Counted from the stretch's first letter, positions 3,906-59,894 are shown. The stretch: DNA of 64,000 nt from Macrostomum hystrix (GCA_950097015.1 CATNEN010000018.1:124001-188000), one strand, 5' to 3'. Notes: a model not told the origin generated them from the sequence alone. Numbers and translations are program-made.

Positions 3906-4841
3906 CCGCGAATTTCAAAACCTAACTCAAAGCCCCAACCAAAACATTTCAACTGCTCTCCTAACAGCTCCATTTCAACCAGTGAAGCAGTGCAAACTCA
4001 TTCACCATGGCAACCATCTCACACTGAGTGCATCATATTTCTGGGATCGTGAGAGCTCTCAATCAGGCTTAGGATCTGTGCTCAAAGTGCCAGAGGAGTC
4101 AGAGCTGCTGCTGCGAAAATGTGTATTAAACTGGCTTCTAACAAGAAAGCATTTGGGCTATTCTCGCGCTCTGACCATAAAAAATGTTTAACGAACGCGC
4201 CCTAGCTACCAGAGACTCTGTGCTCAAAGGACATATGAGCACACTGTGAGCAGTCGCGGCATCCCACCCCAGCCTTCCCTGATGCGGTGCACTCGAGTGT
4301 CTGAGCAGGCTGAGCAGTGCTCTCCGCATATCAGGCAGGGAGAGGCTGTGTTGCTGCCCGATGAAAAGCTGCAGTCTGCTTCTTTAGCAGGCAGCGAGTT
4401 GAGCACAGTTTGTTACCTGAGCACAGTGGCAAAACATCAGGCTGCATACGGTAATGAGTCGCTAACAAAACTCAGTGAATTGAAGGCATTCGGCAGCACA
4501 ACGAGCGGTCAGAGATATAGAAATAAAATATGTGCTCATCTATTCTCAATGCAGCCTCTGCCTTCCCCTACTCTCGTCTCCGGGCAGTCCATTCCAGTCC
4601 CCGTGTTGGCCTCGGTTGCCAAGTGCCGACCTCCTCCCTCCAGCAGGTTTGAGCAGTTTTGCACTCGGTCTTAAGCTCTCTTCTGTTTTAAGCTGCTTTT
4701 AATGGCTCGACTTAACTTTTTTTATGCTTTTGAGATCAGTTTGATTGCTTGTAGACAGGTCCAGGTTGTAGCATGAGATCAGATTATATAGTACACCTTG
4801 GTACCAGAGCTTATGATATGGCAAAGTCTGTTTAGTCCCTC

Positions 4842-5710
4842 CTCTTCCCTCCTCTTCCCTCCTCTCCTCTCCTCTCCTCTCCTCTCCTCTCCTCTCCTCT
4901 CCTCTCCTCTCCTCTCCTCTTCCCTCCTCTCCTCTCTTCTGCTCCTCTCCTCTCCTCCTCTTCTCCTCTCCTCTTCTCCTCTTCTCTTCTCTCCTCTCCT
5001 TTTCTCCTCTCCTCCTCTTCTTTCCTCGCCTCCTCTTCTCTCCTCTCCTCTTCTCTTCTCCTCTCATCTGCTCTTCCCTCCTCTTCTTCTCTCCTCTCCT
5101 CTCCTTTTCCCCCTTCTCCTCGCCTCTTCCCTCCTCTTCCCTCCTCTCCTCTCCTCTTCCCTTTTCTCCTCTTCTCCTCTCCTCTCCTCTTCCCTCCTCT
5201 CATCTCCTCTTCCCTCCTCTTCCCTCCTCTCCTCTCCTCTTCCCTCCTCTCCTCTCTTCTCCTCCTCTCCTCCTCTTCTTCTCTACTCTTCTCCTCTCCT
5301 TTTCTCCTCTCCTCTCCTTTACTCCTCTCCTCCTCTCCTCTCCTCCTCTCCTCTCCTCTTCCCTCCTCTCCTCTCTTCTCCTCCTCTCCTCTCCTCCTCT
5401 TCTCCTCTCCTCTCCTCTCCTTTTCTCCTCTCCTCCTCTTCTCTCCTCTCCTCTCCTTTTCTCCTCTCTTCTCCTCTCCTCTCCTCCTCTTCTTCTCTCC
5501 TCCTCTCCTCTCCTCTTCTGTCCTCTCCTCTCCTTTTCTCCTCTCTTCTCCTCTCCTCTCCTCCTCTTCTTCTCTCCTCTTCTCCTCTCCTCTTCTCTCA
5601 CCTCCCCCCTCTCCTCTCTTCTCCTCCTCTTCCCTACTCTCCTCTCTTCTCCTCCTATTCCCTCCTCTCCTCTCCTATTCTCTCCTCTTCCCTCCTCTCC
5701 TTTCTTCTCC
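4842..5710. repeat. Polypyrimidine (CT-rich) microsatellite upstream of ANK-cGLR copy A
   Basis: Almost pure C/T (CTCCT/CTCTT units). Confidence 0.95.
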
Positions 5711-5847
5711 TGCAGCTCAACAGCCAATAAGCCTCCAGTAAACAAGGCTTCTGGCTGGCTGCAACGGAATGCAAAGGCAAAGTGTCTGGCTACTAAACTT
5801 TCTACCACATTTGCCACTTTCCTAACCCACAAGCAGACACCTGCAAA

Positions 5848-7235
5848 ATGTTTCCCTTACTCACAATACTCACGGCTGTCCTCGTGTACCTCATGAACTC
5901 ACTTCATTCCTCACACCACCGAGAAGACGCACAAGAACTCACCGACCAGGACCTCCTCGCAGCCATCAGAGACGACCGAGTGGAGCCCGTTCAGCGATTC
6001 ATTAACAGCGGCGGGAGCCTCGATACCTTCATCGCCTATGCAGACTCATTTTTTACTCCAGCAATGCTCGCTTGCCGATTCGGAAGACATGAAATTCTCG
6101 TGAGACTCATCCGAGCCATTGCAGATGTAGATAAGCAGAACTGGAGAGGGGCGACAGCATTGTGGATGGCATCACAATATGGTCACCACCGACTGGTGAA
6201 ATCACTCATCAAAGCACGAGCCGACGTCAATCTTCAAAGAAATACTGGCTCCTCACCTCTCTACATTGCATCACAAAATGGCCATAAGGACGTCGTCCAC
6301 TCACTCATCAAAGCACGAGCCGACGTCAATCTTCAAGAGAAAGTCTATGGCCGCTCACCTCTCTACATTGCAACACAATATGGCCACAAGGACGTCGTCG
6401 ACTCACTCATCAAAGCACGAGCCGACGTCAATCTTCAAACAAATACTGGCGAGTCACCTCTCTACATTGCATCACAGCAAGGCCATAAGGACGTCGTCAA
6501 CTCACTCATCAAAGCACGAGCCGACGTCAATCTTCAAAGAAATACTGGCTTCTCACCTCTCAACATTGCATCACAATATGGCCATAAGGACGTCATCGAC
6601 TCACTCATCAAAGCACGTGCCGACGTCAATCTTCAAAGAAATACTGGCTTCTCACCTCTCAACATTGCATCACAATATGGCCATAAGGACGTCATCGACT
6701 CACTCATCAAAGCACGTGCCGACGTCAATCTTCAAACAAATACTGGCTCCTCACCTCTCTACATTGCATCACAAAATGGCCATAAGGACGTCGTCCACTC
6801 ACTCATCAAAGCACGAGCCGACGTCAATCTTCAAGAGAAAGTCTATGGCTCCTCACCTCTCCACATTGCATCACAAAATGGCCATAAGGACGTCGTCCAC
6901 TCACTCATCAAAGCACGAGCCGACGTCAATCTTCAAGAGAAAGTCTATGGCTCCTCACCTCTCTACATTGCATCACAAAATGGCCATAAGGACGTCGTCC
7001 ACTCACTCATCAAAGCACGAGCCGACGTCAATATTCAAACAAATACTGGCTACTCACCTCTCTACATTGCATCACAAAATGGCCACCTCAGTGTTGTTGA
7101 GTCACTCATGAAGGTCGTTGATAGCCCAGAATTGCTGGAAGCTGCTCTGCGAATCGCCACGGAAGTTGGCCATGACCCAGTGGTTGACCTGCTGAGCCCT
7201 GGATCATCCGCGCCTCTGCCTGAGAAGCAGAACAG
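5848..7235 (+). CDS. ANK-cGLR gene copy A, exon 1: hydrophobic N-terminus plus 12 ankyrin repeats
   Basis: 33-34 aa repeats SPLxIASxxGHKDVVxSLIKARADVNLQ. The ORF 'stop' TAG lies inside the donor AACAG|GTAGGA (phase 2, exon ends at 7235). Confidence 0.92.
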
Positions 7236-7387
7236 GTAGGAGCTCCTGTTTCTCCTGTAAAAGTCACATGAGCAATGAGATAATTTGAGACTTCGGATTC
7301 TCTGAGTAATCAGACTCGAAATCTGATAGCTGAAGTTCGGAACTGATTGTGTGTCAGTTATTGTACATATAAAATATGATTTTGGAG

Positions 7388-8151: not shown

Positions 8152-8604
8152 GTGAAACTCAGCACTGCCGCCTCCTCTCACCCTTCAGAGCCTCCCAGCC
8201 TCACTGAACCTCAGCACTGCCGCCTCCTCTCACCCTTCAGAGCCTCCCAGCCTCACTAAACCTCAGCACTGCCGCCTCCTCTCACCCTTCAGAGCCTCCC
8301 AGCCTCACTGAAACTCAGCACTGCCGCCTCCTCTCACCCTTCAGAGCCTCCCAGCCTCACTGAACCTCAGCACTGCCGCCTCCTCTCACCCTTCAGAGCC
8401 TCCCAGCCTCACTGAAACTCAGCACTGCCGCCTCCTCTCACCCTTCAGAGCCTCCCAGCCTCACTGAAACTCAGCACTGCCGCCTCCTCTCACACTTCAG
8501 AGCCTCCCAGCCTCACTGAAACTCAGCACTGCCGCCTCCTCTCACCCTTCAGAGCCTCCCAGCCTCACTGAACCTCAGCACTGCCGCCTCCTCTCACCCT
8601 TCAG
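8152..8604 (+). repeat. 52-bp tandem repeat containing the intron-1 splice acceptor (9 acceptor-like sites)
   Basis: CTCTCAC(C/A)CTTCAG ends at 8188, 8240, ... 8604 (period 52). Only the last is followed by the exon-2 frame. Confidence 0.9.
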
Positions 8605-8954
8605 AGCCGCACCCAGCGACGCAGAGCTGAGCCAGCAGCTGCACTCCAAGCTCTCTCAGTCGGGATTCGTGGACTCCAGAGCCGCCTTGCAGATCGCTGT
8701 GGCTGACGTCTTGCAGGATGTTCTCACGAAGAGATGGAACAATGACGACTGGTTCGCTGTGGGCAGCTTCTCTGAGGCCTGGGGCAACAGCCTGGTCTCT
8801 CTGGATGGCAGAACTGACATTGACTCTGACATCGATGTTATTCGGCTGATTCCAGGAAGGCCGATTCACCCGAGAGATTTGTGCGAGTGCGACCGAGTGG
8901 AGGCTGCTCAGACAGTGGAGCTCAGCAATGGCCACATCCTGAGCTCCGGATTCG
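8605..8954 (+). CDS. ANK-cGLR copy A, exon 2: nucleotidyltransferase catalytic core (GSFSEAWG...SDID)
   Basis: Acceptor CTTCAG|A completes AG+A = Arg in phase with exon 1. The exon reads AAPSDAELSQQLHSKLSQSGFVDSRAAL...WFAVGSFSEAWG...DSDIDV and ends at donor TTCG|GTGAGA (phase 1). Confidence 0.85.
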
Positions 8955-10105: not shown

Positions 10106-11718
10106 CTTCCAACCCAGCCGACACTCAACGAGGCTCCGCCCTGAGACCGTCTGTGGACCAAGTCACCGCCCGCCGCCTCTGCCGCTACCCTCCCATCGCG
10201 CCGCTGCAGCCACCAAGAGTCTCCAACTCCAACATCCCCCAGTCCGTGCTGCAGTCGCTCGAGCGAGACCTCACCGCTGACTCATCGCCCTGTCACGTGG
10301 TGCACGCAGCTCCTCCCGGAATGGGGGGCCAGCAGCTCCGAGTGAGCAGCAGCTTCCTGGAGAGGCGACTGCTGCGAAGTCTCAGCACTCTGCAAGGCCA
10401 GCTGTTCGTCACACTCAAGTGGCTGCTGAAGAAGAAAATCTCAAACGTCGGCTTCAAGTCCTATCACGCAAAGACCGTCACGTTCCGAATGCTGGAGGAG
10501 ACACCTGCTGAGCAGTGGAAGCCGGAGAATCTCGTGAGACTCACGACACGCTCGCTGAAGATTTTGCTGGACGGTGTGGAGAGCGGCTGCAGATCAGACA
10601 CACCTGACGGTCGGATCCTGGAGCACTTCTTCCTGAGCGATGCCGCTGTGTACCTGAAGGGCTTGAAGTCAGCTGAGAGAGTGAGCGAAGCGTTGAATCG
10701 GGCAGCCGGCGCATTGAGTGACGCCATGGCTGAGCTGCCTCAGCTGCTGCTGCAGTTCGAGGACAGTCTGCGACCCGTCACCGACTCGGGCCGATTCCAC
10801 TTCCACCCGTTCCTCATCCTGCCTCTACTCAATGACCGACCCGTGTCAGAAGCCAAGACATGCGAGTTCCACGAGATCTACGACATCGTGAGAGAGTCCG
10901 TGCTTCGTCTGTCCGATGGAGACCGCAGCCCGCAGTCCCGAGAGAGTCTCGCAGAGCTGATCAACAAACTGCCAGACTGCGCCCGATCAGCGCGAGAGTC
11001 TCTCAGAGCGCTGGCCTGCCTGAAGTTCGGCGACAGACGCACTGCTGAAAAAGTTGTGAGCGACTGCGGGCAGTTCAGTGCGAGCAGAGGCATCGATTGG
11101 GGAGCTGAGAGGTCGGCGAGTGAGGCCACTGCGGACTTTGTGTGGCAGCACCTGAAGAGCCGAGACTCCGCCTGGAAATTCTGCTTGGAGTTTGACGAGC
11201 GACCGAAGCTGCCGATTGAGCACGAAGTCTTTGCCGACTGCTTTCCGCTGCTGATTAACTACAGCACATACTTCTACCTGAACTTTGACGCTCTGCTGCG
11301 GGCTCTTTGCAATGAGCTGACAGTAGCAGGAGACGCGAGCGATCAGGACTGGATCCGGGATGTGGCTCAGAGGGAGGATGCGGATGAGCAGGAGCTGCTG
11401 GTGGCTGCGGCGATCTGCGGAGATCTGGAGCTGCTGCGGCGGCTGCGCAGAAGAATCACTCACGAGCTGTGCCGGCTGCCAGGGTGGCTGCAGCAGAAGA
11501 TTGAGAGGCTGAGCAGTCAAGGTGAAGATCGCCAAAACCAAGGTGAAGATCGCCAAGACCAAGGTGAAGATCGCCAAGACCAAGGTGAAGATCGCCAAGA
11601 CCAAGGTGAAGATCGCCAAGACCAAGGTGAAGATTGCCAAGACCAAGGTGAAGATCGCCAAGACCAAGGTGAAGATCGCCAAGACCAAGGTGAAGATCGC
11701 CAAGACCAAGGTGAATAA
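10106..11718 (+). CDS. ANK-cGLR copy A, exon 3: Mab-21/cGAS-like C-terminal part plus helical extension and QGEDRQD repeats
   Basis: Acceptor TTTTTCTCCAG|CT gives G+CT = Ala, in phase. Motifs are SVDQVTA (third carboxylate), [28 protein letters not shown] and LEHFF. The spliced CDS is 1388+350+1613 = 3351 nt = 1116 aa. Confidence 0.88.
11518..11715 (+). repeat. 21-bp coding repeat (QGEDRQD)x9
   Basis: Unit is CAAGGTGAAGATCGCCAAGAC. Copy B has about 1.5 units. Confidence 0.95.
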
Positions 11719-11981
11719 GCATTTGAGCATTCGAGTCGGAGTCAACTTGCATTCCAAGAAAGAAAAACCAGTTGTGGATCCAAATGCTGCCGGTGCTGTG
11801 TGTGTTTGTGACCCTAAAGTGGATGCCAAGAAGACGATTCAACCAGAAAATCAGAAAACACATTTTAACAGAAATTCTACGATCGACTGCAAAGCCATGA
11901 AAAATATGGATATGAAAACGGGCCTCAAATCCTGCAGCTCGGACGCCGCCCTCCGCCATTTCCACAAAATTAATATAGAAA

Positions 11982-14900
11982 TTCAGGCCAGTGACCATTA
12001 AACTTCAGGCCAGTGACTATCGAAATTCAGGCCAGTGACCATTAAACTTCAGGCCATTGACCATTAAACTTCAGGCCAGAGACCATCGAAATTCAGGCCA
12101 GTGACCATTAAACTTCAGGCCAGAGACCATCGAAATTCAGGCCATTGACCATTAAACTTCAGGCCAGTGACTATCGAAATTCAGGCCAGTGACCATTAAA
12201 CTTCAGGCCATTGACCATTAAACTTCAGGCCAGTGACCATCGAAATTCAGGCCAGAGACCATTAAACTTCAGGCCATTGACCATTAAACTTCAGGCGAGA
12301 GACCATCGAAATTCAGGCCAGTGACCATTAAACTTCAGGCCAGAGACCATCGAAATTCAGGCCATTGACCATTAAACTTCAGGCCAGTGACTATCGAAAT
12401 TCAGGCCAGTGACCTACCAACTTATGGGCCAGTGATCATCGAACTTCAGGCCAGTGACAATCGAACTGCAGGCCAGTGACCATTGAACTTCAGCCTCGTG
12501 CTTTGTGAGTGAGTCCTACCTCCTCAGGCCAGTGACAATCGAACTTCAGGCCAGTGACTATCGAACTTTAGGCCTGTGATAATCGAACTTCAGGCCAGTG
12601 ACCATCGAACTTCAGGCCAGTGACCATTGAACTTCAGGCCAGTGACTATTGAACTTCAGCCTCGTGCTTTCTGAGTGAGTCATGTCTCCTCAGGCCAGTG
12701 ACCTACCAACTTATGGGCCAGTGATCATCGAACTTCAGGCCAGTGACAATCGAACTGCAGGCCAGTGACCATTGAACTTCAGCCTCGTGCTTTGTGAGTG
12801 AGTCCTACCTCCTCAGGCCAGTGACAATCGAACTTCAGGCCAGTGACTATCGAACTTTAGGCCTGAGATAATCGAACTTCAGGCCAGTGACCATCGAACT
12901 TCAGGCCAGTGACCATTGAAATTCAGGCCAGTGACTATTGAACTTCAGCCTCGTGCTTTCTGAGTGAGTCATGTCTCCTCAGGCCAGTGACCTACCAACT
13001 TATGGGCCAGTGATCATCGAACTTCAGGCCAGTGACAATCGAACTGCAGGCCAGTGACCATTGAACTTCAGCCTCGTGCTTTGTGAGTGAGTCCTACCTC
13101 CTCAGGCCAGTGACCATCGAACTTCAGGCCAGTGACCATCGAACTTCAGGCCAGTGACCACTGACCAGTGACCAGTGACTATTGAACTTCAGCCTCGTGC
13201 TTTGTGAGTGAGTCCAACCTCCTCAGGCCAGTGACCGAATAACATCAGGCCTGTGACCATCGAACTTCAGTCTCGTGCTTGGGGAGTGAGTCCTACCTTC
13301 CCAGGCCAGTGACCAAATAACTTCCGGCCAGTGACTATCAAACTTCAGGCCAGTGACCATCGAACTTCAGTCTCGTGCTTTGTGAGTGAGTCCTACCTCC
13401 TTAGGCCAGTGACCTAATAACTTCAGGCCAGTGACTATCAAACTTCAGGCCAGTGACTATCAAACTTCAGGCCAGAGACCATCGAACTTCAGGCCAGCGA
13501 CCATCGAACATCAGGCTCGTGCTCTTTTAGTGAGTCCTACCTCCTCAGGCCAGTGACCATCGAACTTCAGGCTCGTGCTTTGTGAGTGAGTCTTGCCTTC
13601 TCAGGCCAGTGACTTTCAAACTTCAGGCCAGTGACCATCTAACTTCAGGCCAGTGACCATCTAACTTCAGGCCAGTGACCATCTAACTTCAGGCCAGTGA
13701 CCATCGAACTTCAGTCTTGTGCTTTGTGAGTGAGTCCTACCTCCTTAGGCCAGTGACCTAATAACTTCAGGCCAGTGACTATCGAACTTCAGGCCAGTGA
13801 CCATCGAACTTCAGGCAAGTGACCATCGAACTTCAGGCTCCTGCTTTGTGAGTGAGTCATGCCTCCTCAGGCCAGTGACCTACCAACTAATGGGCCAGTG
13901 ACCATCGAACTTCAGGCCAGTGAATATCGAACTTCAGGCCAGTGACCATTGAACTTCAGCCTCGTGCTTTCTGAGTGAGACCTACCTCCTTAGGCCAGTG
14001 ACCTAATAACTTCAGGCCAGTGACTATCGAACTTCAGGCCAGAGACCATCGAACTTCAGGCCAGTGACTATCGAACTTCAGGCCAGAGACCATCGAACTT
14101 CAGGCCAGTGACCATCGAACTTCAGGCTCCTGCTTTGTGAGTGAGTCCTACCTCCTCAGGCCAGTGACTGTCGTACTTCAGGCCAGAGACCATCGAACTT
14201 CAGGCTCCTGCTTTGTGAGTGAGTCCTACCTCCTCAGGCCAGTGACTGTCGTACTTCAGGCCAGAGACCATCGAACTTCAGGCTCCTGCTTTGTGAGTGA
14301 GTCCTACCGCCTCAGGCAAGTGACCATCGAACTTCAGGCTCGTGCTTTGTGAGTGAGTCATGCCTCCTCATGCCAGTGACTTTCAAACTTCAGGCCAGTG
14401 ACTATCTAACTTCAGGCAAGTGACCATCGAACTTCAGGACAGTGACCATCGAACTTCAGGCTCGTGCTTTGTGAGTGAGTCCTACCTCCTCAGGCCAGTG
14501 ACTGTCGTACTTCAGGCCAGAGACCATCGAACTTCAGGCTCCTGCTTTGTGAGTGAGTCCTACCGCCTCAGGCAATTGACCATCGAACTTCAGGCTCGTG
14601 CTTTGTGAGTGAGTCTTACCTGCTCAGGCCAGTGACTCTTGAACTTCAGGCCAGAGACAATCGAACTTCAGGCAAGTGACCATCGAACTTCAGGCCAGTG
14701 ACCATCGAACATCAGGCTCGTGCTCTTTTAGTGAGTCCTACCTCCTCAGGACAGTGACCATCGAACTTCAGGCTCGTGCTTTGTGAGTGAGTCCTACCTC
14801 CTTAGGCCAGTGACCATTGAACTTCAGCCTCGTGCTTTCTGAGTGAGTCCTACCTCCTTAGGCCAGTGACCTAATAACTTCAGGCCAGTGACTATCGAAC

Positions 14901-17900
14901 TTCAGGCCAGAGACCATCGAACTTCAGGCCAGTGACTATCGAACTTCAGGCCAGTGACTATCGAACTTCAAGCTCGTGCTTTGTGAGTGAGTCATGCCTC
15001 CTCATGCCAGTGACTTTCAAACTTCAGGCCAGTGACTATCGAACTTCAGGACAGAAAACATCGAACTTCAGGCAAGTGACCATCGAACTTCAGGCCAGTG
15101 ACCATCGAACATCAGGCTCGTGCTCTTTTAGTGAGTCCTACCTCCTCAGGACAGTGACCATCGAACTTCAGGCTCGTGCTTTGTGAGTGAGTCATGCCTT
15201 CTCAGGCCAGTGACTTTCAAACTTCAGGCCAGTGACTATCGAACTTCAGGCCAGAGACCGTCGAACTTCAGGCCAGTGACAATCGAACTTCAGTCTCGTG
15301 CTTTGTGAATGAGTCCTACCTCCTCAGGCCAGTGACCATCGAACTTCAGGCCAGTGACCATTGAAATTCAGGCCAGTGACTATTGAACTTCAGCCTCGTG
15401 CTTTCTGAGTGAGTCATGTCTCCTCAGGCCAGTGACCTACCAACTTATGGGCCAGTGATCATCGAACTTCAGGCCAGTGACAATCGAACTGCAGGCCAGT
15501 GACCATTGAACTTCAGCCTCGTGCTTTGTGAGTGAGTCCTACCTCCTCAGGCCAGTGACAATCGAACTTCAGGCCAGTGACTATCGAACTTTAGGCCTGA
15601 GATAATCGAACTTCAGGCCAGTGACCATCGAACTTCAGGCCAGTGACCATTGAAATTCAGGCCAGTGACTATTGAACTTCAGCCTCGTGCTTTCTGAGTG
15701 AGTCATGTCTCCTCAGGCCAGTGACCTACCAACTTATGGGCCAGTGATCATCGAACTTCAGGCCAGTGACAATCGAACTGCAGGCCAGTGACCATTGAAC
15801 TTCAGCCTCGTGCTTTGTGAGTGAGTCCTACCTCCTCAGGCCAGTGACCATCGAACTTCAGGCCAGTGACCATCGAACTTCAGGCCAGTGACCACTGACC
15901 AGTGACCAGTGACTATTGAACTTCAGCCTCGTGCTTTGTGAGTGAGTCCAACCTCCTCAGGCCAGTGACCGAATAACATCAGGCCTGTGACCATCGAACT
16001 TCAGTCTCGTGCTTGGGGAGTGAGTCCTACCTTCCCAGGCCAGTGACCATCGAACTTCAGGCCAGTGACTATCGAACTTCAGGCTCGTGCTTTGTGAGTG
16101 AGTCATGCCTCCTCAGGCCAGTGACCTACCAACTTATGGGCCAGTGACCATCTAACTTCAGGCCAGTGAATATCGAACTTCGGGCCTGTGGCCATTGAAC
16201 TTCAGCCTCGTGCTTTCTGAGTGAGTCCTACCTCCTTAGACCAGTGACCTAATAACTTCAGGCCAGTGACTATCAAACTTCAGGCCAGTGACCATCGAAC
16301 TTCAGTCTCGTGCTTTGTGAGTGAGTCCTACCTCCTAAGGTCATTGACTATCGAACTTCAGGACAGTAATCATCGAACTTCAGGCTCGTGCAATGTGAGT
16401 GAGTCCTATCTCCTCAGGCCAGTGACCTAATAACTTCAGGCCAGTGACCATCGAACTTCAGGCCAGTGAATATCGAACTTCAGGCCTGTGGCTATCGAAC
16501 TTAAGGCCAGTGACCATCGAACTTCAGGCCAGTGACCATTGAACTTCAGCCTCGTGCTTTCTGAGTGAGTCCTACCTCCTTAGGCCAGTGACCAAATAAC
16601 TTCCGGCCAGTGACTATCAAACTTCAGGCCAGTGACCATTGAACTTCAGCCTCGTGCTTTCTGAGTGAGTCCTACCTCCTTAGGCCAGTGACCAAATAAC
16701 TTCCGGCCAGTGACCATCGAACTTCAGTCTCGTGCTTTGTGAGTGAGTCCTACCTCCTTAGGCCAGTGACCTAATAACTTCAGGCCAGTGACTATCAAAC
16801 TTCAGGCCAGTGACTATCAAACTTCAGGCCAGAGACCATCGAACTTCAGGCCAGCGACCATCGAACATCAGGCTCGTGCTCTTTTAGTGAGTCCTACCTC
16901 CTCAGGCCAGTGACCATCGAACTTCAGGCTCGTGCTTTCTGAGTGAGTCTTGCCTTCTCAGGCCAGTGACTTTCAAACTTCAGGCCAGTGACCATCTAAC
17001 TTCAGGCCAGTGACCATCTAACTTCAGGCCAGTGACCATCTAACTTCAGGCCAGTGACCATCGAACTTCAGTCTTGTGCTTTGTGAGTGAGTCCTACCTC
17101 CTTAGGCCAGTGACCTAATAACTTCAGGCCAGTGACTATCGAACTTCAGGCCAGTGACCATCGAACTTCAGGCAAGTGACCATCGAACTTCAGGCTCCTG
17201 CTTTGTGAGTGAGTCATGCCTCCTCAGGCCAGTGACCTACCAACTTATGGGCCAGTGACCATCGAACTTCAGGCTCCTGCTTTGTGAGTGAGTCATGCCT
17301 CCTCAGGCCAGTGACCTACCAACTTATGGGCCAGTGACCATCGAACTTCAGGCCAGTGAATATCGAACTTCAGGCCAGTGACCATTGAACTTCAGCCTCG
17401 TGCTTTCTGAGTGAGACCTACCTCCTTAGGCCAGTGACCTAATAACTTCAGGCCAGTGACTATCGAACTTCAGGCCAGAGACCATCGAACTTCAGGCCAG
17501 TGACTATCGAACTTCAGGCCAGAGACCATCGAACTTCAGGCCAGTGACCATCGAACTTCAGGCTCCTGCTTTGTGAGTGAGTCCTACCTCCTCAGGCCAG
17601 TGACTGTCGTACTTCAGGCCAGAGACCATCGAACTTCAGGCTCCTGCTTTGTGAGTGAGTCCTACCGCCTCAGGCAAGTGACCATCGAACTTCAGGCTCG
17701 TGCTTTGTGAGTGAGTCATGCCTCCTCATGCCAGTGACTTTCAAACTTCAGGCCAGTGACTATCGAACTTCAGGCAAGTGACCATCGAACTTCAGGACAG
17801 TGACCATCGAACTTCAGGCTCGTGCTTTGTGAGTGAGTCCTACCTCCTCAGGCCAGTGACTGTCGTACTTCAGGCCAGAGACCATCGAACTTCAGGCTCC

Positions 17901-18777
17901 TGCTTTGTGAGTGAGTCCTACCGCCTCAGGCAATTGACCATCGAACTTCAGGCTCGTGCTTTGTGAGTGAGTCTTACCTGCTCAGGCCAGTGACTCTTGA
18001 ACTTCAGGCCAGAGACAATCGAACTTCAGGCAAGTGACCATCGAACTTCAGGCCAGTGACCATCGAACATCAGGCTCGTGCTCTTTTAGTGAGTCCTACC
18101 TCCTCAGGACAGTGACCATCGAACTTCAGGCTCGTGCTTTGTGAGTGAGTCCTACCTCCTTAGGCCAGTGACCATTGAACTTCAGCCTCGTGCTTTCTGA
18201 GTGAGTCCTACCTCCTTAGGCCAGTGACCTAATAACTTCAGGCCAGTGACTATCGAACTTCAGGCCAGAGACCATCGAACTTCAGGCCAGTGACTATCGA
18301 ACTTCAGGCCAGTGACTATCGAACTTCAAGCTCGTGCTTTGTGAGTGAGTCATGCCTCCTCATGCCAGTGACTTTCAAACTTCAGGCCAGTGACTATCGA
18401 ACTTCAGGACAGAAAACATCGAACTTCAGGCAAGTGACCATCGAACTTCAGGCCAGTGACCATCGAACATCAGGCTCGTGCTCTTTTAGTGAGTCCTACC
18501 TCCTCAGGACAGTGACCATCGAACTTCAGGCTCGTGCTTTGTGAGTGAGTCATGCCTTCTCAGGCCAGTGACTTTCAAACTTCAGGCCAGTGACTATCGA
18601 ACTTCAGGCCAGAGACCGTCGAACTTCAGGCCAGTGACAATCGAACTTCAGTCTCGTGCTTTGTGAATGAGTCCTACCTCCTCAGGCCAGTGACCATCGA
18701 ACTTCAGGCCAGTGACCATCGAAGTTCAGGCCACTGACCATCGAACTTCAGGCCACTGACCATTGAACTTTAGGCAA
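11982..18777. repeat. 6.8-kb complex satellite: 22-bp unit GAACTTCAGGCCAGTGACCATC plus a 56-bp variant, with higher-order repeats
   Basis: Period is 22 at the start. There is a 289-bp higher-order repeat (12413, 12702, 12991; 15436, 15725) and a 3358-bp block duplication (14420/17778, 14932/18290). Confidence 0.95.
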
Positions 18778-42055: not shown

Positions 42056-45000
42056 CTCTTCTTTTCTTCTCTTCTTTTCTTCTCTTCTCTTCTTCTTTCC
42101 CTTCCCTTCTTCTTTCCCCTTCTCTTCCCTTCTCTTCTCTCCTCTCTTCTCTTCTTTTTTCTTCTCTTCTCTTCTTTTTTCTTCTTTTTTCTTCTCTTCT
42201 CTCTTCTCCTCTTCTCTTCTCTTCTTCCCTTCTTCTTTTTTCTTCTCTTCTCTTCTCTCTTCTCCTCTTCTCTTCTCTTCTTCCCTTCTTCTTTTTTCTT
42301 CTCTTCTCTTCTCTCTTCTCCTCTTCTCTTCTCTTCTTCCCTTCTTCTCTTCTTCTCCTCTTTTCTTCTCTTCTCTTCTCTTCTCTTCTCTTCTTCTCTT
42401 CTCCTCTCTTTTCTTCTCTTCTCTTCTCTTCTCTTCTCTTCTTCTCTTCTCCTCTCTTTTCTTCTCTTCTCTTCTCTTCTTTTTTCTTCTCTTCTCTTCT
42501 CTTCTTTTTTCTTCTCTTCTCTTCTCCTCTCTTTTCTTCTCTTCTCTTCTCTTCTCTTCTCTTCTCTTCTCTCTTCTTCTCTTCTTCTCCTCTCTTCTCT
42601 TCTCTTCTCTTCTCTTCTTCTCTTCTTCTCTCTTTTCTTCTCTTCTCTTCTCTTCTCTTCTTCTCTTCTCCTCTCTTTTCTTCTCTTCTCTTCTCTTCTC
42701 TTCTCTTCTTCTCTTTTTCTCTTCTCTTCTTCTCTTCTCTTCTTTTCTCTTCTTTTCTTCTCTTCTTTTCTTCTCTTCTCTTCTCTTCTCTTCTTCCCTT
42801 CTCCTCTTCTTCTCCTCCTCTTCTCTTCTCTTCTCTTCTCTTCTTCTCTCCTCTTCTCTTCCCTTCTCTTCTCTTCTCTTCTCTTCTCTTCTTTTCTCTT
42901 CTTTTCTTCTCTTCTTTTCTTCTCTTCTCTTCTCTTCTCTTCTTCCCTTCTCCTCTTCTTCTCCTCCTCTTCTCTTCTCTCTTCTTCTCTTCTTCTCTCC
43001 TCTTCTCTTCTCTTCTCTCCTCTTCTCTTCCCTTCTCTCCTCTTCTCTTCTCTTCTTCTCTTCTCTTCTCTTCTCCTCTTCTCTTCTCTTCTCCTCTTCT
43101 CTTCTCTTCTTCTCTTCTTCTTTCCCTTCCATTCTTCTTTCCCCTTCTCTTCTCTTCTCTTCTCTTCTTCCCTTCTCCTCTTCTTCTCCTCCTCTTCTCT
43201 TCTCTCTTCTTCTCTTCTTCTCTCCTCTTCTCTTCTCTTCTCTCCTCTTCTCTTCCCTTCTCTCCTCTTCTCTTCTCTTCTTCTCTTCTCTTCTCTTCTC
43301 CTCTTCTCTTCTCTTCTCCTCTTCTCTTCTCTTCTCTCTTCTTCTCTTCTCTTCTCTTCTCTTCTCTTCTTCTCTTTTTCTCTTCTCTTGTTCTCTTCTC
43401 TTCTTTTCTCTTCTTTTCTTCTCTTCTTTTCTTCTATTCTCTTCTCTTCTCTTCTTCCCTTCTCCTCTTCTTCTCCTCCTCTTCTCTTCTCTCTTCTTCT
43501 CTTCTTCTCTCCTCTTCTCTTCTCTTCTCTCCTCTTCTCTTCCCTCTCTTCTCTTCTCTTCTTCTCTTCTCTTCTCTTCTCCTCTTATCTTCTCTTCTCC
43601 TCTTCTCTTCTCTTCTTCTCTTCTTCTTTCCCTTCCCTTCTTCTTTCCCCTTCTCTTCTCTCCTCTTCTCTTCTCTTCTTTTCTTCTCTTCTCTTCTCTT
43701 CTTTTCTTCTCTTCTTTTCTCTTCTTTTCTTCTCTTCTTTTCTTCTCTTCTCTTCTCTTCTCTTCTTCCCTTCTCCTCTTCTTCTCCTCCTCTTCTCTTC
43801 TCTTCTCTTCTCTTCTTCTCTTTTTCTCTTCTCTTCTTCTCTTCTCTTCTTTTCTCTTCTCTTCTTCCCTTCTCCTCTTCTTCTCCTCCTATTCTCTTCT
43901 CTCTTCTTCTCTTCTTCACTCCTCTTCTCTTCTCTTCTCTCCTCTTCTCTTCCCTTCTCTCCTCTTCTCTTCCCTTCTCTTCTCTTCTCTTCTCTTCTCT
44001 TCTTTTCTCTTCTTTTCTTCTCTTCTTTTCTTCTCTTCTCTTCTCTTCTCTTCTTCCCTTCTCCTCTTCTTCTCCTCCTCTTCTCTTCTCTCTTCTTCTC
44101 TTCTTCTCTCCTCTTCTCTTCTCTTCTCTCCTCTTCTCTTCCCTTCTCTCCTCTTCTCTTCTCTTCTTCTCTTCTCTTCTCTTCTCCTCTTCTCTTCTCT
44201 TCTCCTCTTCTCTTCTCTTCTTCTCTTCTTCTTTCCCTTCCATTCTTCTTTCCCCTTCTCTTCTCTTCTCTTCTCTTCTTCCCTTCTCCTCTTCTTCTCC
44301 TCCTCTTCTCTTCTCTCTTCTTCTCTTCTTCTCTCCTCTTCTCTTCTCTTCTCTCCTCTTCTCTTCCCTTCTCTCCTCTTCTCTTCTCTTCTTCTCTTCT
44401 CTTCTCTTCTCCTCTTCTCTTCTCTTCTCCTCTTCTCTTCTCTTCTCTCTTCTTCTCTTCTCTTCTCTTCTCTTCTCTTCTTCTCTTTTTCTCTTCTCTT
44501 GTTCTCTTCTCTTCTTTTCTCTTCTTTTCTTCTCTTCTTTTCTTCTATTCTCTTCTCTTCTCTTCTTCCCTTCTCCTCTTCTTCTCCTCCTCTTCTCTTC
44601 TCTCTTCTTCTCTTCTTCTCTCCTCTTCTCTTCTCTTCTCTCCTCTTCTCTTCCCTCTCTTCTCTTCTCTTCTTCTCTTCTCTTCTCTTCTCCTCTTATC
44701 TTCTCTTCTCCTCTTCTCTTCTCTTCTTCTCTTCTTCTTTCCCTTCCCTTCTTCTTTCCCCTTCTCTTCTCTCCTCTTCTCTTCTCTTCTTTTCTTCTCT
44801 TCTCTTCTCTTCTTTTCTTCTCTTCTTTTCTCTTCTTTTCTTCTCTTCTTTTCTTCTCTTCTCTTCTCTTCTCTTCTTCCCTTCTCCTCTTCTTCTCCTC
44901 CTCTTCTCTTCTCTTCTCTTCTCTTCTTCTCTTTTTCTCTTCTCTTCTTCTCTTCTCTTCTTTTCTCTTCTCTTCTTCCCTTCTCCTCTTCTTCTCCTCC

Positions 45001-47060
45001 TATTCTCTTCTCTCTTCTTCTCTTCTTCACTCCTCTTCTCTTCTCTTCTCTCCTCTTCTCTTCCCTTCTCTCCTCTTCTCTTCTCTTCTTCTCTTCTTTC
45101 CCCTTCTCTTCTCTCCTCTTCTCTTCTCTTCTCTTCTCTTCTTTTCTTCTCTTCTTTTCTTCTCTTCTCTTCTCTTCTCTTCTTTTCTTCTCTTCTTTTC
45201 TTCTCTTCTCTTCTCTTCTTCTCTTCTCTTCTCTTCTCTTCTTTTTTCTTCTCTTCTTCTCTTCTCTTCTCTTCTCTTCTCTTCTCTTCTCCTCTTCTCT
45301 TCTCTTCTTCTCTTCTTCTTTCCCTTCCCTTCTTCTTTCCCCTTCTCTTCTCTCGTCTTCTCTTCTCTTCTTTTCTTCTCTTCTCTTCTCTTCTTCTCTT
45401 CTCTTCTTTTCTTTTTCTCTTCTTTTCTCTTCTCTTCTCTTCTTTTCTTTTCTCTTCTCCTCTTCTCTTCTCTTCTTTTTTCTTCTCTTCTCTTCTCTTC
45501 TCTTCTCTTCTCTTCTCTCCTCTTCTCTTCTCTTCTCTCCTCTTCTCTTCCCTTCTCTTCTCTTCTCTTCTCTTCTTCTCTTTTTCTCTTCTCTTCTTCT
45601 CTTCTCTTCTTTTCTCTTCTTTTCTTCTCTTCTTTTCTTCTCTTCTCTTCTCTTCTCTTCTTCCCTTCTCCTCTTCTTCTCCTCCTCTTCTCTTCTCTCT
45701 TTTTCTCTTCTTCTCTCCTCTTCTCTTCTCTTCTCTCCTCTTCTCTTCCCTTCTCTCCTCTTCTCTTCCCTTCTCTTCTCTTCTCTTCTCTTCTTCTCTT
45801 CTCTTCTCTTCTCCTTTTCTCTTCTCTTCTCCTCTTCTCCTCTCTTCTTCTCTTCTTCTTTCCCTTCGCTTCTTCTTTCCCCTTCTCTTCTCTCCTCTTC
45901 TCTTCTCTTCTCTTCTCTTCTTTTCTTCTCTTCTCTTTTCTTCTCTTCTTTTCTCTTCTTCTCTTCTCTTCTTTTCTTCTTCTCTTCTTTTCTCTTCTCT
46001 TCTCTTCTTTTCTTTTCTCTTCTCCTCTACTCTTCTCTTCTTTTTTCTTCTCTTCTCTTCTCTTCTCTTCTCTTCTTCTCTTCTTCTCTCTTTTCTTCTC
46101 TTCTCTTCTCTTCTCTTCTCTTCTTCTCTTCTCTTCTTTTCTCTTCTTTTCTTCTCTTCTTTTCTTCTCTTCTCTTCTCTTCTCTGCTTCCCTTCTCCTC
46201 TTCTTCTCCTCCTCTTCTCTTCTCTCTTCTTCTCTTCTTCTCTCCTCTTCTCTTCTCTTCTTTTCTTCTCTTCTCTTCTCTTCTCTTCTTCTCTTCTCTT
46301 CTCTTCTCTTCTTTTTTCTTCTTTTCTTCTCTTCTCTTCTCTTCTCTTCTTTTTTCTTCTCGTCTTCTCTTCTCTTCTCTTCTCTTCTTTTTTCTTCTCT
46401 TCTTCTCTTCCCTTCTCTTCTCTTCTCTTCTCTTCTCTTCTCTTCTCTTCTTCTCTTCTCTTCTCTTCTCTTCTCTTCTCTTCTCTTCTCTTCTCCTCTT
46501 CTCTTCTTCTTTCCCTTCCCTTCTTCTTTCCCCTTCTCTTCTCTTCTTTTCTTCTCTTCTTTTCTTCTCTTCTCTTCTCTTCTCTTCTTCCCTTCTCCTC
46601 TTCTTCTCCTCCTCTTCTCTTCTCTCTTCTTCTCTTCTCTTCTCTTCTCTTCTTTTCTTCTCTTCTCTTCTCTTCTTCTCTTCTCTTCTTTTCTTTTTCT
46701 CTTCTTTTCTCTTCTCTTCTCTTCTTTTCTTTTCTCTTCTCCTCTTCTCTTCTCTTCTTTTTTCTTCTCTTCTCTTCTCTTCTCTTCTCTTCTCTTCTCT
46801 CCTCTTCTCTTCTCTTCTCTCCTCTTCTCTTCCCTCTCTTCTCTTCTCTTCTTCTCTTCTCTTCTCTTCTCCTCTTATCTTCTCTTCTTTTCTTCTCTTC
46901 TCTTCTCTTCTTCTCTTCTCTTCTTTTCTTTTTCTCTTCTTTTCTCTTCTCTTCTTTTTTCTTCTCCTCTTCTCTTCTCTTCTCTTCCCTTCTCTTCTCT
47001 TCTCTTCTCTTCTCTTCTCTTCTCTCCTCTTCTCTTCTCTTCTCTCCTCTTCTCTTCCCT
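42056..47060. repeat. 5-kb (CTCTT)n/(AAGAG)n satellite with a 1111-bp internal duplication
   Basis: Rare G/A variants recur at offset 1111 (G at 43390 and 44501). Confidence 0.95.
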
Positions 47061-52654: not shown

Positions 52655-52776
52655 ATCTCTGTTTTCTGGCAACAAAATTTGCTTTGTGTGTTATAATTGC
52701 TTTTACAGAACTACTTCCAATGCAGTTTAGCATAACTTCACTGCTAATTTTGGCCTTGATTCCAACATTGCTTAAT

Positions 52777-55700
52777 CTCTTCTTCTTCTCTTCTCTCTCT
52801 TCTTTTCTTCTCTTCTCTTCTTTTCTTCTCTTCTTTTCTTCTCTTCTCTTCTCTTCTTCTCTTCTCTTCTCTTCTCTTCTTTTTTCTTCTCTTCTTCTCT
52901 TCTCTTCTCTTCTCTTCTCTTCTCTTCTCTTCTCCTCTTCTCTTCTCTTCTTCTCTTCTTCTTTCCCTTCCCTTCTTCTTTCCCCTTCTCTTCTCTCCTC
53001 TTCTCTTCTCTTCTTTTCTTCTCTTCTCTTCTCTTCTTCTCTTCTCTTCTTTTCTTTTTCTCTTCTTTTCTCTTCTCTTCTCTTCTTTTCTTTTCTCTTC
53101 TCCTCTTCTCTTCTCTTCTTTTTTCTTCTCTTCTCTTCTCTTCTCTTCTCTTCTCTTCTCTCCTCTTCTCTTCTCTTCTCTCCTCTTCTCTTCCCTTCTC
53201 TTCTCTTCTCTTCTCTTCTTCTCTTTTTCTCTTCTCTTCTTCTCTTCTCTTCTTTTCTCTTCTTTTCTTCTCTTCTTTTCTTCTCTTCTCTTCTCTTCTC
53301 TTCTTCCCTTCTCCTCTTCTTCTCCTCCTCTTCTCTTCTCTCTTCTTCTCTTCTTCTCTCCTCTTCTCTTCTCTTCTCTCCTCTTCTCTTCCCTTCTCTC
53401 CTCTTCTCTTCCCTTCTCTTCTCTTCTCTTCTCTTCTTCTCTTCTCTTCTCTTCTCCTTTTCTCTTCTCTTCTCCTCTTCTCCTCTCTTCTTCTCTTCTT
53501 CTTTCCCTTCCCTTCTTCTTTCCCCTTCTCTTCTCTCCTCTTCTCTTCTCTTCTCTTCTCTTCTTTTCTTCTCTTCTCTTTTCTTCTCTTCTTTTCTCTT
53601 CTTCTCTTCTCTTCTTTTCTTCTTCTCTTCTTTTCTCTTCTCTTCTCTTCTTTTCTTTTCTCTTCTCCTCTTCTCTTCTCTTCTTTTTTCTTCTCTTCTC
53701 TTCTCTTCTCTTCTCTTCTTCTCTTCTTCTCTCTTTTCTTCTCTTCTCTTCTCTTCTCTTCTCTTCTTCTCTTCTCTTCTTTTCTCTTCTTTTCTTCTCT
53801 TCTTTTCTTCTCTTCTCTTCTCTTCTCTGCTTCCCTTCTCCTCTTCTTCTCCTCCTCTTCTCTTCTCTCTTCTTCTCTTCTTCTCTCCTCTTCTCTTCTC
53901 TTCTTTTCTTCTCTTCTCTTCTCTTCTCTTCTTCTCTTCTCTTCTCTTCTCTTCTTTTTTCTTCTTTTCTTCTCTTCTCTTCTCTTCTCTTCTTTTTTCT
54001 TCTCTTCTTCTCTTCTCTTCTCTTCTCTTCTTTTTTCTTCTCTTCTTCTCTTCCCTTCTCTTCTCTTCTCTTCTCTTCTCTTCTCTTCTCTTCTTCTCTT
54101 CTCTTCTCTTCTCTTCTCTTCTCTTCTCTTCTCTTCTTCTCTTCTCTTCTTCTTTCCCTTCCCTTCTTCTTTCCCCTTCTCTTCTCTTCTTTTCTTCTCT
54201 TCTTTTCTTCTCTTCTCTTCTCTTCTCTTCTTCCCTTCTCCTCTTCTTCTCCTCCTCTTCTCTTCTCTCTTCTTCTCTTCTCTTCTCTTCTCTTCTCTTC
54301 TTCTCTTTTTCTCTTCTCTTCTTCTCTTCTCTTCTTTTCTCTTCTTTTCTTCTCTTCTTTTCTTCTCTTCTCTTCTCTTCTCTTCTTCCCTTCTCCTCTT
54401 CTTCTCCTCCTCTTCTCTTCTCTCTTCTTCTCTTCTTCTCTCCTCTTCTCTTCTCTTCTCTCCTCTTCTCTTCCCTCTCTTCTCTTCTCTTCTTCTCTTC
54501 TCTTCTCTTCTCCTCTTATCTTCTCTTCTTTTCTTCTCTTCTCTTCTCTTCTTCTCTTCTCTTCTTTTCTTTTTCTCTTCTTTTCTCTTCTCTTCTCTTC
54601 TTTTCTTTTCTCTTCTCCTCTTCTCTTCTCTTCTTTTTTCTTCTCTTCTCTTCTCTTCTCTTCTCTTCTCTTCTCTCCTCTTCTCTTCTCTTCTCTCCTC
54701 TTCTCTTCCCTTCTCTTCTCTTCTCTTCTCTTCTTCTCTTTTTCTCTTCTCTTCTTCTCTTCTCTTCTTTTCTCTTCTTTTCTTCTCTTCTTTTCTTCTC
54801 TTCTCTTCTCTTCTCTTCTTCCCTTCTCCTCTTCTTCTCCTCCTCTTCTCTTCTCTCTTCTTCTCTTCTTCTCTCCTCTTCTCTTCTCTTCTCTCCTCTT
54901 CTCTTCCCTTCTCTCCTCTTCTCTTCCCTTCTCTTCTCTTCTCTTCTCTTCTTCTCTTCTCTTCTCTTCTCCTTTTCTCTTCTCTTCTCCTCTTCTCCTC
55001 TCTTCTTCTCTTCTTCTTTCCCTTCCCTTCTTCTTTCCCCTTCTCTTCTCTCATCTTCTCTTCTCTTCTCTTCTTTTCTTCTCTTCTCTTTTCTTCTCTT
55101 CTTTTCTCTTCTTCTCTTCTCTTCTTTTCTTCTTCTCTTCTTTTCTCTTCTCTTCTCTTCTTTTCTTTTCTCTTCTCCTCTTCTCTTCTCTTCTTTTTTC
55201 TTCTCTTCTCTTCTCTTCTCTTCTCTTCTTCTCTTCTTCTCTCTTTTCTTCTCTTCTCTTCTCTTCTCTTCTCTTCTTCTCTTCTCTTCTTTTCTCTTCT
55301 TTTCTTCTCTTCTTTTCTTCTCTTCTCTTCTCTTCTCTGCTTCCCTTCTCCTCTTCTTCTCCTCCTCTTCTCTTCTCTCTTCTTCTCGTCTTCTCTCCTC
55401 TTCTCTTCTCTTCTTTTCTTCTCTTCTCTTCTCTTCTCTTCTTCTCTTCTCTTCTCTTCTCTTCTTTTTTCTTCTTTTCTTCTCTTCTCTTCTCTTCTCT
55501 TCTTTTTTCTTCTCTTCTTCTCTTCTCTTCTCTTCTCTTCTTTTTTCTTCTCTTCTTCTCTTCCCTTCTCTTCTCTTCTCTTCTCTTCTCTTCTCTTCTC
55601 TTCTTCTCTTCTCTTCTCTTCTCTTCTCTTCTCTTCTCTTCTCTTCTCCTCTTCTCTTCTTCTTTCCCTTCCCTTCTTCTTTCCCCTTCTCTTCTCTTCT

Positions 55701-57913: not shown

Positions 57914-59193
57914 ATGTTTCCCTTACTCACAATACTCACCGCTGTCCTCCTGTACCTCATGAACTCACTTCATTCCTCACACCACCGAGAAGACGCACAA
58001 GAACTCACCGACCAGGACCTCCTCGCAGCCATCAGAGACGACCGAGTGGAACCCGTTCAGCGATTCATTAACAGCGGCGGGAGCCTCGACACCTTCATCG
58101 CCTATGCTGACTCATTCTTTACTCCAGCAATGCTCGCTTGCCGATTCGGAAGACATGAAATTCTCGTGAGACTCATCCGAGCCATTGCAGATGTAGATAA
58201 GCAGAACTGGAGAGGAACGACGGCATTGTATATTGCATCACTATATGGACACCACCGACTGGTGAAATCACTCATCAAAGCACGAGCCGACGTCAATCTT
58301 CAAGATAATACTGGCGCCTCACCTCTCCACATAGCATCCTGCAATGGCCATAACGACGTCGTCCACTCACTCATCAAAGCACGAGCCGACGTCAATCTTC
58401 AAACAAATACTGGCTACTCACCTCTCTACATTGCATCACAAAATGGCCATAACGACGTCGTCCACTCACTCATCAAAGCACGAGCCGACGTCAATCTTCA
58501 AACAATTACTGGCGCCTCACCTCTCTACATTGCATCATATCAAGGCCATAACGACGTCGTCCACTCACTCATCAATGCACGAGCCGACGTCAATCTTCAA
58601 GAAAATACTGGCTACTCACCTCTCCACATTGCATCACAAAATGGCCATAACGACGTCGTCCACTCACTCATCAAAGCACGAGCCGACGTCAATCTTCAAA
58701 CAATTACTGGCGCCTCACCTCTCTACATTGCATCATATCAAGGCCATAACGACGTCGTCCACTCACTCATCAAAGCACGAGCCGACGTCAATCTTCAAGA
58801 AAATACTGGCGCCTCACCTGTCTACATTGCATCACAAAATGGCCATAACGACGTCGTCCACTCACTCATCAAAGCACGAGCCGACGTCAATCTTCAAGAT
58901 AATACTGGCGCCTCACCTCTCTACATTGCATCACGAAATGGCCATAACGACGTCGTCCACTCACTCATCAAAGCACGAGCCGACGTCAATCTTCAAAAAA
59001 ATACTGGCGCCTCACCTCTCTACATTGCATCTCGCAATGGCCACCTCAGTGTTGTCGAGTCACTCATGAAGGTCGTTCATAGCCCCGACTTGCTGACAGC
59101 TGCTCTGCGAATCGCCACGGAAATCGGCCATGACCAAGTGGTTGACCTGCTGAGCCGTGGATCCTCCGCGCCATTGCCTGAGAAGCAAAACAG
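57914..59193 (+). CDS. ANK-cGLR copy B, exon 1: hydrophobic N-terminus plus 11 ankyrin repeats
   Basis: Repeats SPLxIASxxGHNDVVHSLIKARADVNLQ, with donor AACAG|GTAGGA at 59193/59194. Confidence 0.92.
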
Positions 59194-59715
59194 GTAGGAG
59201 CTCCTGTTTCTTGTAAAAGTCACCTGAACAATCATAGATACTTCGGATTCTCTGAGTATTCAGACTCCAAATCTGATAGCTGAACTTCGGAACTGATTGC
59301 TATTGTGTTAATGTGGTATCGTCAGTTATTGTACATATAAAATATGGTAGCCTGTGTAGAACCCTTGTGAGCACAAAAAGGTTCTCTCGAATACCTGCTG
59401 CTTTTACTTCGCATTGTTAAGAGCTGGCGAATTTATAGCGAAAAGCCTCGAATTCCCAACAATGACCACTAGGAGTAAAATAACGGAAAACTACGATAAT
59501 AGGAAATAGTTATTACATATGTCTGCTTGCGCCGAAGATTATACCACAAGGATAGGAAATTGTTAGTGGCGCTGGTGTGCCGCCGGCCCTAGTTAGCAGT
59601 GGCGCCCTCAGAAGGCGAAAGACAGAACTTCCTAGTAGTTCTTATTGTCAATGCCTGTTTAGCCACAGACAGCAGACTCCACTTCAAAATTCTCAGTTTA
59701 TTCTCAGTTTATGAA

Positions 59716-59894
59716 TGCCGCCTCCTCTCACCCTTCAGAGCCTCCCAGCCTCACTGAACCTCAGCACTGCCGCCTCCTCTCACCCTTCAGAGCCTCCCAG
59801 ACTCACTGTAACTCAGCACTGCCGCCTCCTCTCACCCTTCAGAGCCTCCCAGCCTCACTGAAACTCAGCACTGCCGCCTCCTCTCACCCTTCAG
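59716..59894 (+). repeat. 52-bp acceptor-containing repeat, copy B (4 acceptor-like sites)
   Basis: AG ends at 59738, 59790, 59842 and 59894. Confidence 0.9.

Follow-up and report, generated by a model that had tools for sequence, protein, structure and literature searches.

The ankyrin repeat arrays of two genes, A and B, in Macrostomum hystrix are best described as fungal-NLR-style hypervariable ankyrin arrays on animal cGAS-like receptors (cGLRs), a class in which fusions to ankyrin repeats (ANK-cGLR fusions) have already been catalogued in this genus. Both genes lie in a stretch of repeat-rich eukaryotic DNA of 64,000 nucleotides (GCA_950097015.1 CATNEN010000018.1:124001-188000, hereafter the window), and they belong to a clade that numbers at least 19 genes of this kind in the Macrostomum genome. 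The reading that we favor, and hold to be fairly probable, is that this is an expressed ANK-cGLR clade with homogenised units and recombining arrays, in which diversifying selection acts on a recognition surface that gates the nucleotidyltransferase (NTase).

Gene A begins with an open reading frame at 5848-7239 (463 aa) and gene B with one at 57914-59197 (427 aa), and each encodes an ankyrin protein; all features of the two genes given below are on the plus strand. A Pfam scan of the two ORFs matched Ank_2 with E=1e-174, and the scores of Ank_2 (PF12796, 568 bits with a cut-off of 27.3) and Ank (PF00023, 275 bits) identify an ankyrin repeat domain. In addition, an AF2 model of the exon-1 protein shows helix pairs at a spacing of 33-34 residues, as ankyrin repeats require; this single-sequence model (mean pLDDT 67, repeat helices 87-90) was used for the placement of secondary structure and not for surface geometry. 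TRF found 99-bp arrays at 6202-7085 in A and at 58268-59043 in B. Exon 1 of gene A (5848-7235), which was defined by the ORF, the Pfam ankyrin families, the splice donor and a splice contig, encodes an N-terminal hydrophobic helix, the ankyrin domain and a short linker. Its N-terminal region (aa 1-85) precedes a divergent first full ankyrin repeat (aa 86-118, RLIRAIADVDKQNW..., 6103-6201), which is conserved among paralogs and lies outside the near-identical array. The array itself, delimited by TRF and by unit tables, consists of nine near-identical units of 33/34 aa (99/102 bp) and spans aa 119-418 (6202-7101); it is followed by a C-terminal capping ankyrin repeat (SLMKVV...GHDPVVDLL) and the linker (7102-7235), where the model places helices within residues 427-449. 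Exon 1 of gene B (57914-59193) has the same layout and the same CAG/GTAGGA donor, with an array of eight near-identical 33-aa units (aa 119-382, 58268-59059).

With the caps counted, gene A has 12 repeats (the N-terminal repeat, the divergent repeat, the nine near-identical units and the C-cap) and gene B has 11, eight of which are near-identical units. We set the unit register so that column 1 is the S of SLIK. In this register, all eight internal units of A read GHKD, three of them with a one-residue insertion (EKVY), all seven internal units of B read GHND, and the final unit reads GHLS in both genes. These repeat counts, signatures and insertions had been proposed in an earlier sequence-only reading of the window, and our split into units confirms them. 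The same reading had called the scaffold essentially invariant, and the 12-residue scaffold indeed changes only twice among the A and B units, by one K>N (unit B4) and one L>I (unit A9).

Outside the repeats, the first 24 residues of A (5848-5919), which are present also in B and in the paralogs, form a conserved hydrophobic segment that is predicted to be a single long helix (residues 2-24). This helix could be a membrane anchor or a signal sequence, either of which would be unusual for a cGLR. Each gene copy is also flanked by like satellites, with pyrimidine repeats of the (CTCTT)n type that extend over kilobases on the upstream side and an array of a 22-bp satellite on the downstream side (satellite coordinates in the window: 4838-5711, 42056-47057 and 52776-57766; 11978-18775 and 62894-64000). 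This arrangement suggests duplication units of about 52 kb with satellites at their boundaries, which could favor unequal exchange.

Each array is exon 1 of an expressed and spliced three-exon ankyrin-cGAS-like gene. The apparent stop codon of A is overlapped by the CAG/GTAGGA donor, and exon 1 ends at 7235. The acceptor at 8604/8605 opens a frame with the GS and D-x-D motifs of an NTase core (exon 2, 8605-8954, supported by the reading frame and by spliced contigs), and the acceptor at 10105/10106 opens the frame of a Mab-21/cGAS-like C-terminal part (exon 3, 10106-11718); the phases fit. Gene B has the same splice sites as gene A, and the protein encoded by its exon 2 (NTase core, 59895-60244) is 96% identical to that of A, while the Mab-21-like protein part encoded by its exon 3 (61190-62727) is 94% identical. 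Transcript-like contigs from runs X5 and X6 cover the exons and leave out the introns. In X6, one contig runs from 7235 straight to 8605 (joint 7232->8602, cut +3), loose contig ends in X5 and X2 carry exon ends that match the same splice, and a further contig joint links exon 2 to exon 3 (8954->10132, with 26 paralog-type letters in between). The contigs on the array are Logan contigs of about 100-300 nt from four runs, which show expression and splicing and not repeat number or alleles.

The enzyme part was assigned from its motifs and from its relatives. Exon 2 contains the G-S motif and the acidic [DE]-x-[DE] pair that mark an NTase core (GSFSEAWG, then SDIDV), and this GS/DxD motif is conserved in the M. 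lignano homologs. The third catalytic acidic residue was not located, a Pfam scan of exon 2 alone gave no match, and exon 3 scored 17.9 bits against Mab-21_C, below the cut-off of 24.1. When a 10-sequence family profile was compared with the PDB, it matched cGAS chains only (E=2e-4). In the databases, the nearest relatives come from M. lignano and bear the names ANK_REP_REGION or Mab-21 (65-67% identity over exon 3 and 51% over the ANK part), and in these the ANK, NTase core and Mab-21 parts follow in the same order as in genes A and B. A search of the genome with STING_LBD gave a single sub-threshold match (25.6 bits with a cut-off of 27; C2:9104529-9104996, minus strand), and the candidate STING-like ORF (a 337-aa open frame; longest start-to-stop 307 aa) was negative in a Pfam scan.

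Two further tandem repeats lie within the genes. In intron 1, a 52-bp tandem repeat (8153-8608 in A, 59716-59898 in B) ends exactly at the exon-2 acceptor, with 8.8 copies in A and 3.5 in B. Since every copy carries the acceptor-like sequence CCCTTCAG, many cryptic acceptors precede the one that is used. At the C-terminal end of exon 3 of A, a 21-bp in-frame coding repeat (QGEDRQD, 11518-11715) is present in 9.4 copies; gene B has only about 1-2 copies (about 62600-62650). QGEDRQD is thus a second variable-number repeat within these genes, and RNA-like contigs have loose ends inside it in A, at 11541 and 11694. Loose contig ends were also found in the array of A, at 6285 and 6987 (runs X1, X2, X5 and X6), where the contigs leave the array for sequence encoding the HEVARSLI scaffold of the C3/C2 subfamily, and therefore transcripts of paralogs of this subfamily are present in the same runs.

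Genes A and B are part of a large family. The ANK exon has 146 matches in the genome and exon 3 has at least 85; judged from their positions, about 50 of the ANK loci have a cGLR exon-3 match no more than a few kb away. We compared A and B with 17 fetched paralog loci. In each of the 19 genes in this set the array is highly conserved and contains between 6 and 53 units, and the same columns are variable in all of them. Exon 2 lies downstream of the array in 16 of the 17 fetched loci, with exon 3 also inside the fetched stretch in 15; the stretch fetched for C38_3694k breaks off within exon 2, a short way before exon 3, and that for C18:1.7k holds no enzyme exon, the nearest exon-3 match being about 16 kb away. 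In ANK-cGLR paralogs at a greater distance, the repeats are of the ordinary kind, with 50-62% identity, so the high internal conservation of the arrays could be a transient state of young arrays. The 53-unit array belongs to a 1911-aa open frame at C3:10733322-10741324, whose downstream exon-3 match has two in-frame TGA codons; this locus is possibly a pseudogene. A 2726-aa ankyrin open frame at C39:20414618-20420809 adjoins another cGLR exon.

The variation within the arrays is concentrated in eight of the 34 columns of the unit, namely 13-16, 18, 22, 26 and 27. When the 15 internal units of the two genes are compared, 17 of the 24 nucleotide columns that belong to these eight codons are variable, against 10 of the 78 other columns (Fisher p=1.3e-7). 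Many of the variable codons differ at 2-3 nucleotides, and the codons next to them are identical. The sequence-only reading had placed the variation almost only at ligand-facing positions. This was largely right, in that 73% of the pairwise amino-acid differences between internal units fall in the eight hypervariable columns, and somewhat overstated, in that 16% fall in three helix-2 columns (30, 31 and 34) on the outer helix; the remaining 23 columns hold 11%. Its list of variable positions likewise left out the variation on the outer helix, that is, the H/D/N position that ends the unit, the V/I position and the K/N signature. In larger samples the variation is again not spread evenly over the scaffold, as the original claim implied. 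Among 158 units from 14 close paralogs, the entropy peaks at columns 13-16, 18, 22, 26 and 27, where it reaches up to 2.8 bits, and scaffold columns stay at or below 0.5 bits; the variable columns are once more these in 172 units from five more distant genes, whose scaffold is different.

In ankyrin domains, the concave face that binds partners is made up of the beta-turn together with the first turn and the end of helix 1. The AF2 model assigns columns 13-18 to a loop and columns 22, 26 and 27 to helix 1; the columns with subfamily signatures (30, 31 and 34) belong to helix 2. The best PDB sequence matches to the arrays are DARPins (E=4e-118), and the alignment equates column 13 with DARPin module position D1, 14 with x2, 15 with x3, 18 with x5, 22 with H9, 26 with x13 and 27 with x14, while the near-fixed Q at column 12 aligns to DARPin position 33. 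The exact numbers of the randomised DARPin positions, which reportedly go back to Binz and colleagues in 2003, agree with the aligned repeats. Five of the six randomised positions are among the seven aligned variable ones (hypergeometric p=5e-4), which bears out the earlier proposal that the variable sites are those randomised in designed ankyrin binders; the sixth, position 33, is not variable. The randomised positions of DARPins form a concave binding surface (PMC8229355). What the flatworm arrays share with the DARPins is an invariant, consensus-like scaffold that is diversified at module positions 2, 3, 5, 13 and 14. DARPins, however, are synthetic and have 2-3 repeat units, whereas the flatworm genes have up to 53; in the flatworm arrays position 33 is nearly fixed as Q, positions 1 and 9 vary as well, and the one-residue insertion in the beta-turn is a further variant state.

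A closer natural parallel is found in fungi. Dyrka et al. (2014, PMC4986451) described highly internally conserved (HiC) ANK, TPR and WD repeats in fungal NLRs (HET-E/HET-D, Pa_3_8560), with earlier work on these repeats (Paoletti 2007 and Chevanne 2010) as cited there, and reported that such repeats are rare in metazoa (0.8% of repeats). The likeness suggested by the sequence-only reading proved to be a good match feature by feature: units of 33-34 aa that are at least 85% identical, copies that differ in repeat number, exchange both within and between paralogs, and a few hypervariable positions on the concave face and the beta-hairpin with an excess of replacements. By the identity to the gene consensus, which averages 0.876 over 300 aa in A and 0.915 over 264 aa in B, both arrays lie above the HiC threshold (at least 85% identical over at least 100 aa). 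The mean pairwise identity between units over all columns is 0.815 in A and 0.864 in B (0.92 and 0.95 without the hypervariable columns), a measure on which A is borderline. The two systems differ in that the flatworm repeats are N-terminal to a cGAS-like nucleotidyltransferase, whereas those of fungi are C-terminal to a NACHT or NB-ARC NTPase. In addition, the host is an animal, and the differences in repeat number seen in it are those between paralogs. Highly variable plant NLRs are reported to carry their diversity on the LRR surface (Prigozhin and Krasileva 2021, PMC8226289). Plant NLRs and lamprey VLRs follow the same concept, an immune receptor in which a solenoid of repeats is diversified mainly on the concave side that faces the ligand, but they use LRR instead of ANK, and the plant NLR repeats are not near-identical.

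ANK-cGLR fusions were catalogued by Li et al. (2023, PMC9980059), including PAA86972.1 and PAA45980.1 from Macrostomum lignano, and Table S2 of that study lists Ank_2 on the M. lignano cGLRs. These fusions have the same architecture and come from the same genus as A and B; the repeats of the M. lignano ANK-cGLR models that we retrieved are more degenerate than the arrays of A and B. Li et al. (2023) treated ANK as a generic interaction module and did not analyze near-identical hypervariable arrays. Constructs 89 and 90 of that study start after the ANK region, and judging by these two of the five M. lignano entries, the M. lignano cGLRs were screened without ANK. Our literature searches for a hypervariable repeat regime in cGLRs or in Macrostomum found nothing.

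That ankyrin domains commonly bind host proteins raises the alternative that the domain has an internal role, in auto-inhibition, oligomerisation, localisation or the binding of a host adaptor, and that its variation reflects the tuning of paralogs or co-evolution with a host partner instead of non-self recognition. The conserved N-terminal hydrophobic helix hints at localisation, and where the ligand of a cGLR is known, it is a nucleic acid to which the enzyme domain binds directly (Li et al. 2023, PMC9980059). However, arrays of 6 to 53 units, with a unit content that changes between copies with identical flanks, are hard to square with a fixed host partner, and the pattern matches that of fungal non-self receptors. 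We regard an internal role as unlikely, while still giving it some weight.

Selection on the variable codons was assessed against the synonymous divergence of the same units and of the flanks. Between units within genes, scaffold dS is 0.027 and scaffold dN is 0.017, while the JC-corrected dN of the variable codons is 0.43. The ratio of variable-codon dN to scaffold dS is thus 15 (8-23.5 by bootstrap over genes), with values of 12 in A and 15 in B, which agrees with the earlier description of a diverse surface on a homogenised scaffold. Between paralogs, the raw variable-codon dN of 0.36-0.40 exceeds the dS of the unique N-terminal flank, which is 0.07 for copies inside the C18 group and 0.19 for copies from different groups. 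The hypervariable codons themselves show about as many synonymous as non-synonymous differences (0.33 each). Since omega is about 1 there, the case for selection rests on the contrast with synonymous sites in the scaffold and the flanks. Step counts per column on a minimal spanning tree gave a contrast of only 2- to 6-fold; such counts saturate with the number of distinct codons, and we preferred the frequency-weighted pairwise estimates as more informative. As in the fungal HiC repeats, there is an excess of replacement at concave-face positions (a ratio of 15 in columns of the beta-turn and helix 1, with omega of about 1 within the codons). We infer that selection maintains or creates diversity against a homogenised background, from a contrast that is not a formal test of omega>1.

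The equality of the two kinds of change inside the variable codons would also fit young tandem arrays that drift neutrally, the surface positions being simply the least constrained, with no selection for diversity and no role in recognition. Also in favor of such drift, the whole clade is young (flank dS 0.07-0.26), and older paralogs have ordinary degenerate repeats. Against this, the replacement divergence of the variable codons is about 15-fold above the synonymous divergence of the same unit pairs and 2- to 5-fold above flank dS, the same columns are variable independently in 19 genes, and the variable codons often differ at several nucleotides beside identical ones. Because replacement divergence cannot exceed synonymous divergence under neutrality, neutral relaxation cannot give these values, and we consider this explanation improbable.

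The arrays turn over by whole units, as the sequence-only reading had proposed, and copies with identical flanks differ by the insertion, replacement and loss of units. The N-terminal coding sequence of A is identical to that of the neighboring C18:104k copy (dS 0), and the two arrays have five units with no differences, together with one inserted and two replaced units; the C18:41k copy lacks four units. These recent paralogs with identical flanks have 6, 9 and 10 units, and the long arrays of the family contain multi-unit block duplications. Among 147 internal units, we found 77 distinct hypervariable signatures. After whole-unit copies were removed, the hairpin and helix blocks were nearly independent (MI 1.77, compared with 1.62 when shuffled), which fits sub-unit exchange or recurrent mutation.

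Homogenisation appears to extend beyond single genes. Outside the hypervariable codons, the mean nucleotide distance between units is 0.032 within genes and 0.066 between genes, and the nearest unit lies in the same gene 57% of the time, compared with 9% expected. The clustering of units by gene that had been anticipated is present only weakly: in a tree of the A and B units, three label changes are needed, 15 of 500 shuffles do as well, and there are no clean per-gene clades. The sole fixed difference between A and B units is one nucleotide, AAG or AAC at column 30, and C18:85k mixes A-type and B-type units. These results suggest concerted evolution that seems to act on the gene cluster as a whole no less than on each gene by itself. 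The gene at C20:1-9000 was considered as a clean allele (haplotig) of a C18 copy and rejected as such, since it matches the C18:104k copy at 98.6% identity over exon 2, the intron and exon 3 but B and C18:1k at only about 92% over the ANK exon. This mosaic points to recombination between members of the cluster or to a divergent haplotype.

An artefact of assembly, with arrays mis-assembled or collapsed and paralogs that are in fact haplotigs, is very improbable. C18 and C20 are short contigs full of satellites, and the near-identity of the enzyme part of C20 to a C18 copy is what a haplotig would give; however, the 19 arrays lie on six contigs, all in frame and with intact caps, a single contig carries six copies in tandem, independent runs contain both the splice and the sequences of the exons, and arrays of 1-6 kb fit within the span of long reads. 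Lamprey VLRs diversify somatically, and a programmed somatic diversification of the flatworm arrays, toward which only the many donor-like units nearby point and these not directly, is scarcely credible, given that the germline arrays are complete and expressed and that no incomplete germline gene flanked by cassettes was seen.

Under the favored reading of diversifying selection on homogenised, recombining arrays, the 33/34-aa units are kept almost identical, even at synonymous sites, and whole units are added to, dropped from and exchanged among the arrays through unequal recombination or conversion, inside single paralogs as well as from one paralog to another. In each unit, seven or eight positions, in the beta-turn and in the first turn and the end of helix 1, are kept highly diverse. 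Diversifying selection would act on these as a protein-recognition surface, and the occupancy of this surface would control the attached nucleotidyltransferase, so that an NLR-like variable sensor would have been grafted onto cGLR signalling. In such a receptor, the variable face would bind ligands, the ligands would be non-self, and binding would gate the enzyme. The recombination-diversified recognition repertoire first suggested from the sequence is supported by our results, with ligand binding and non-self recognition proposed by analogy to the fungal receptors. A more specific possibility, which we put forward tentatively, is that the clade carries NLR-style ankyrin sensors, diversified by recombination and hyper-polymorphic from one individual to another, each of which may bind a different pathogen or non-self protein and trigger cyclic-nucleotide signalling.

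To our knowledge, ligands have been assigned to a minority of cGLRs. If this more specific possibility is true, the genes of the clade would be the first cGLRs with a rapidly evolving protein-recognition repertoire instead of nucleic-acid sensing. Among about 50 ANK-bearing cGLRs in this genome, at least 19 have the signature of fungal non-self receptors, with an invariant scaffold, a hypervariable face and a fast turnover of units. This signature speaks for protein ligands and for an arms race, and it marks the residues of interest. The arrays are also a natural counterpart to the design of DARPin libraries. HiC repeat diversification, which has been documented mainly in fungal NLRs, would thus have arisen on a different signalling enzyme in an animal.
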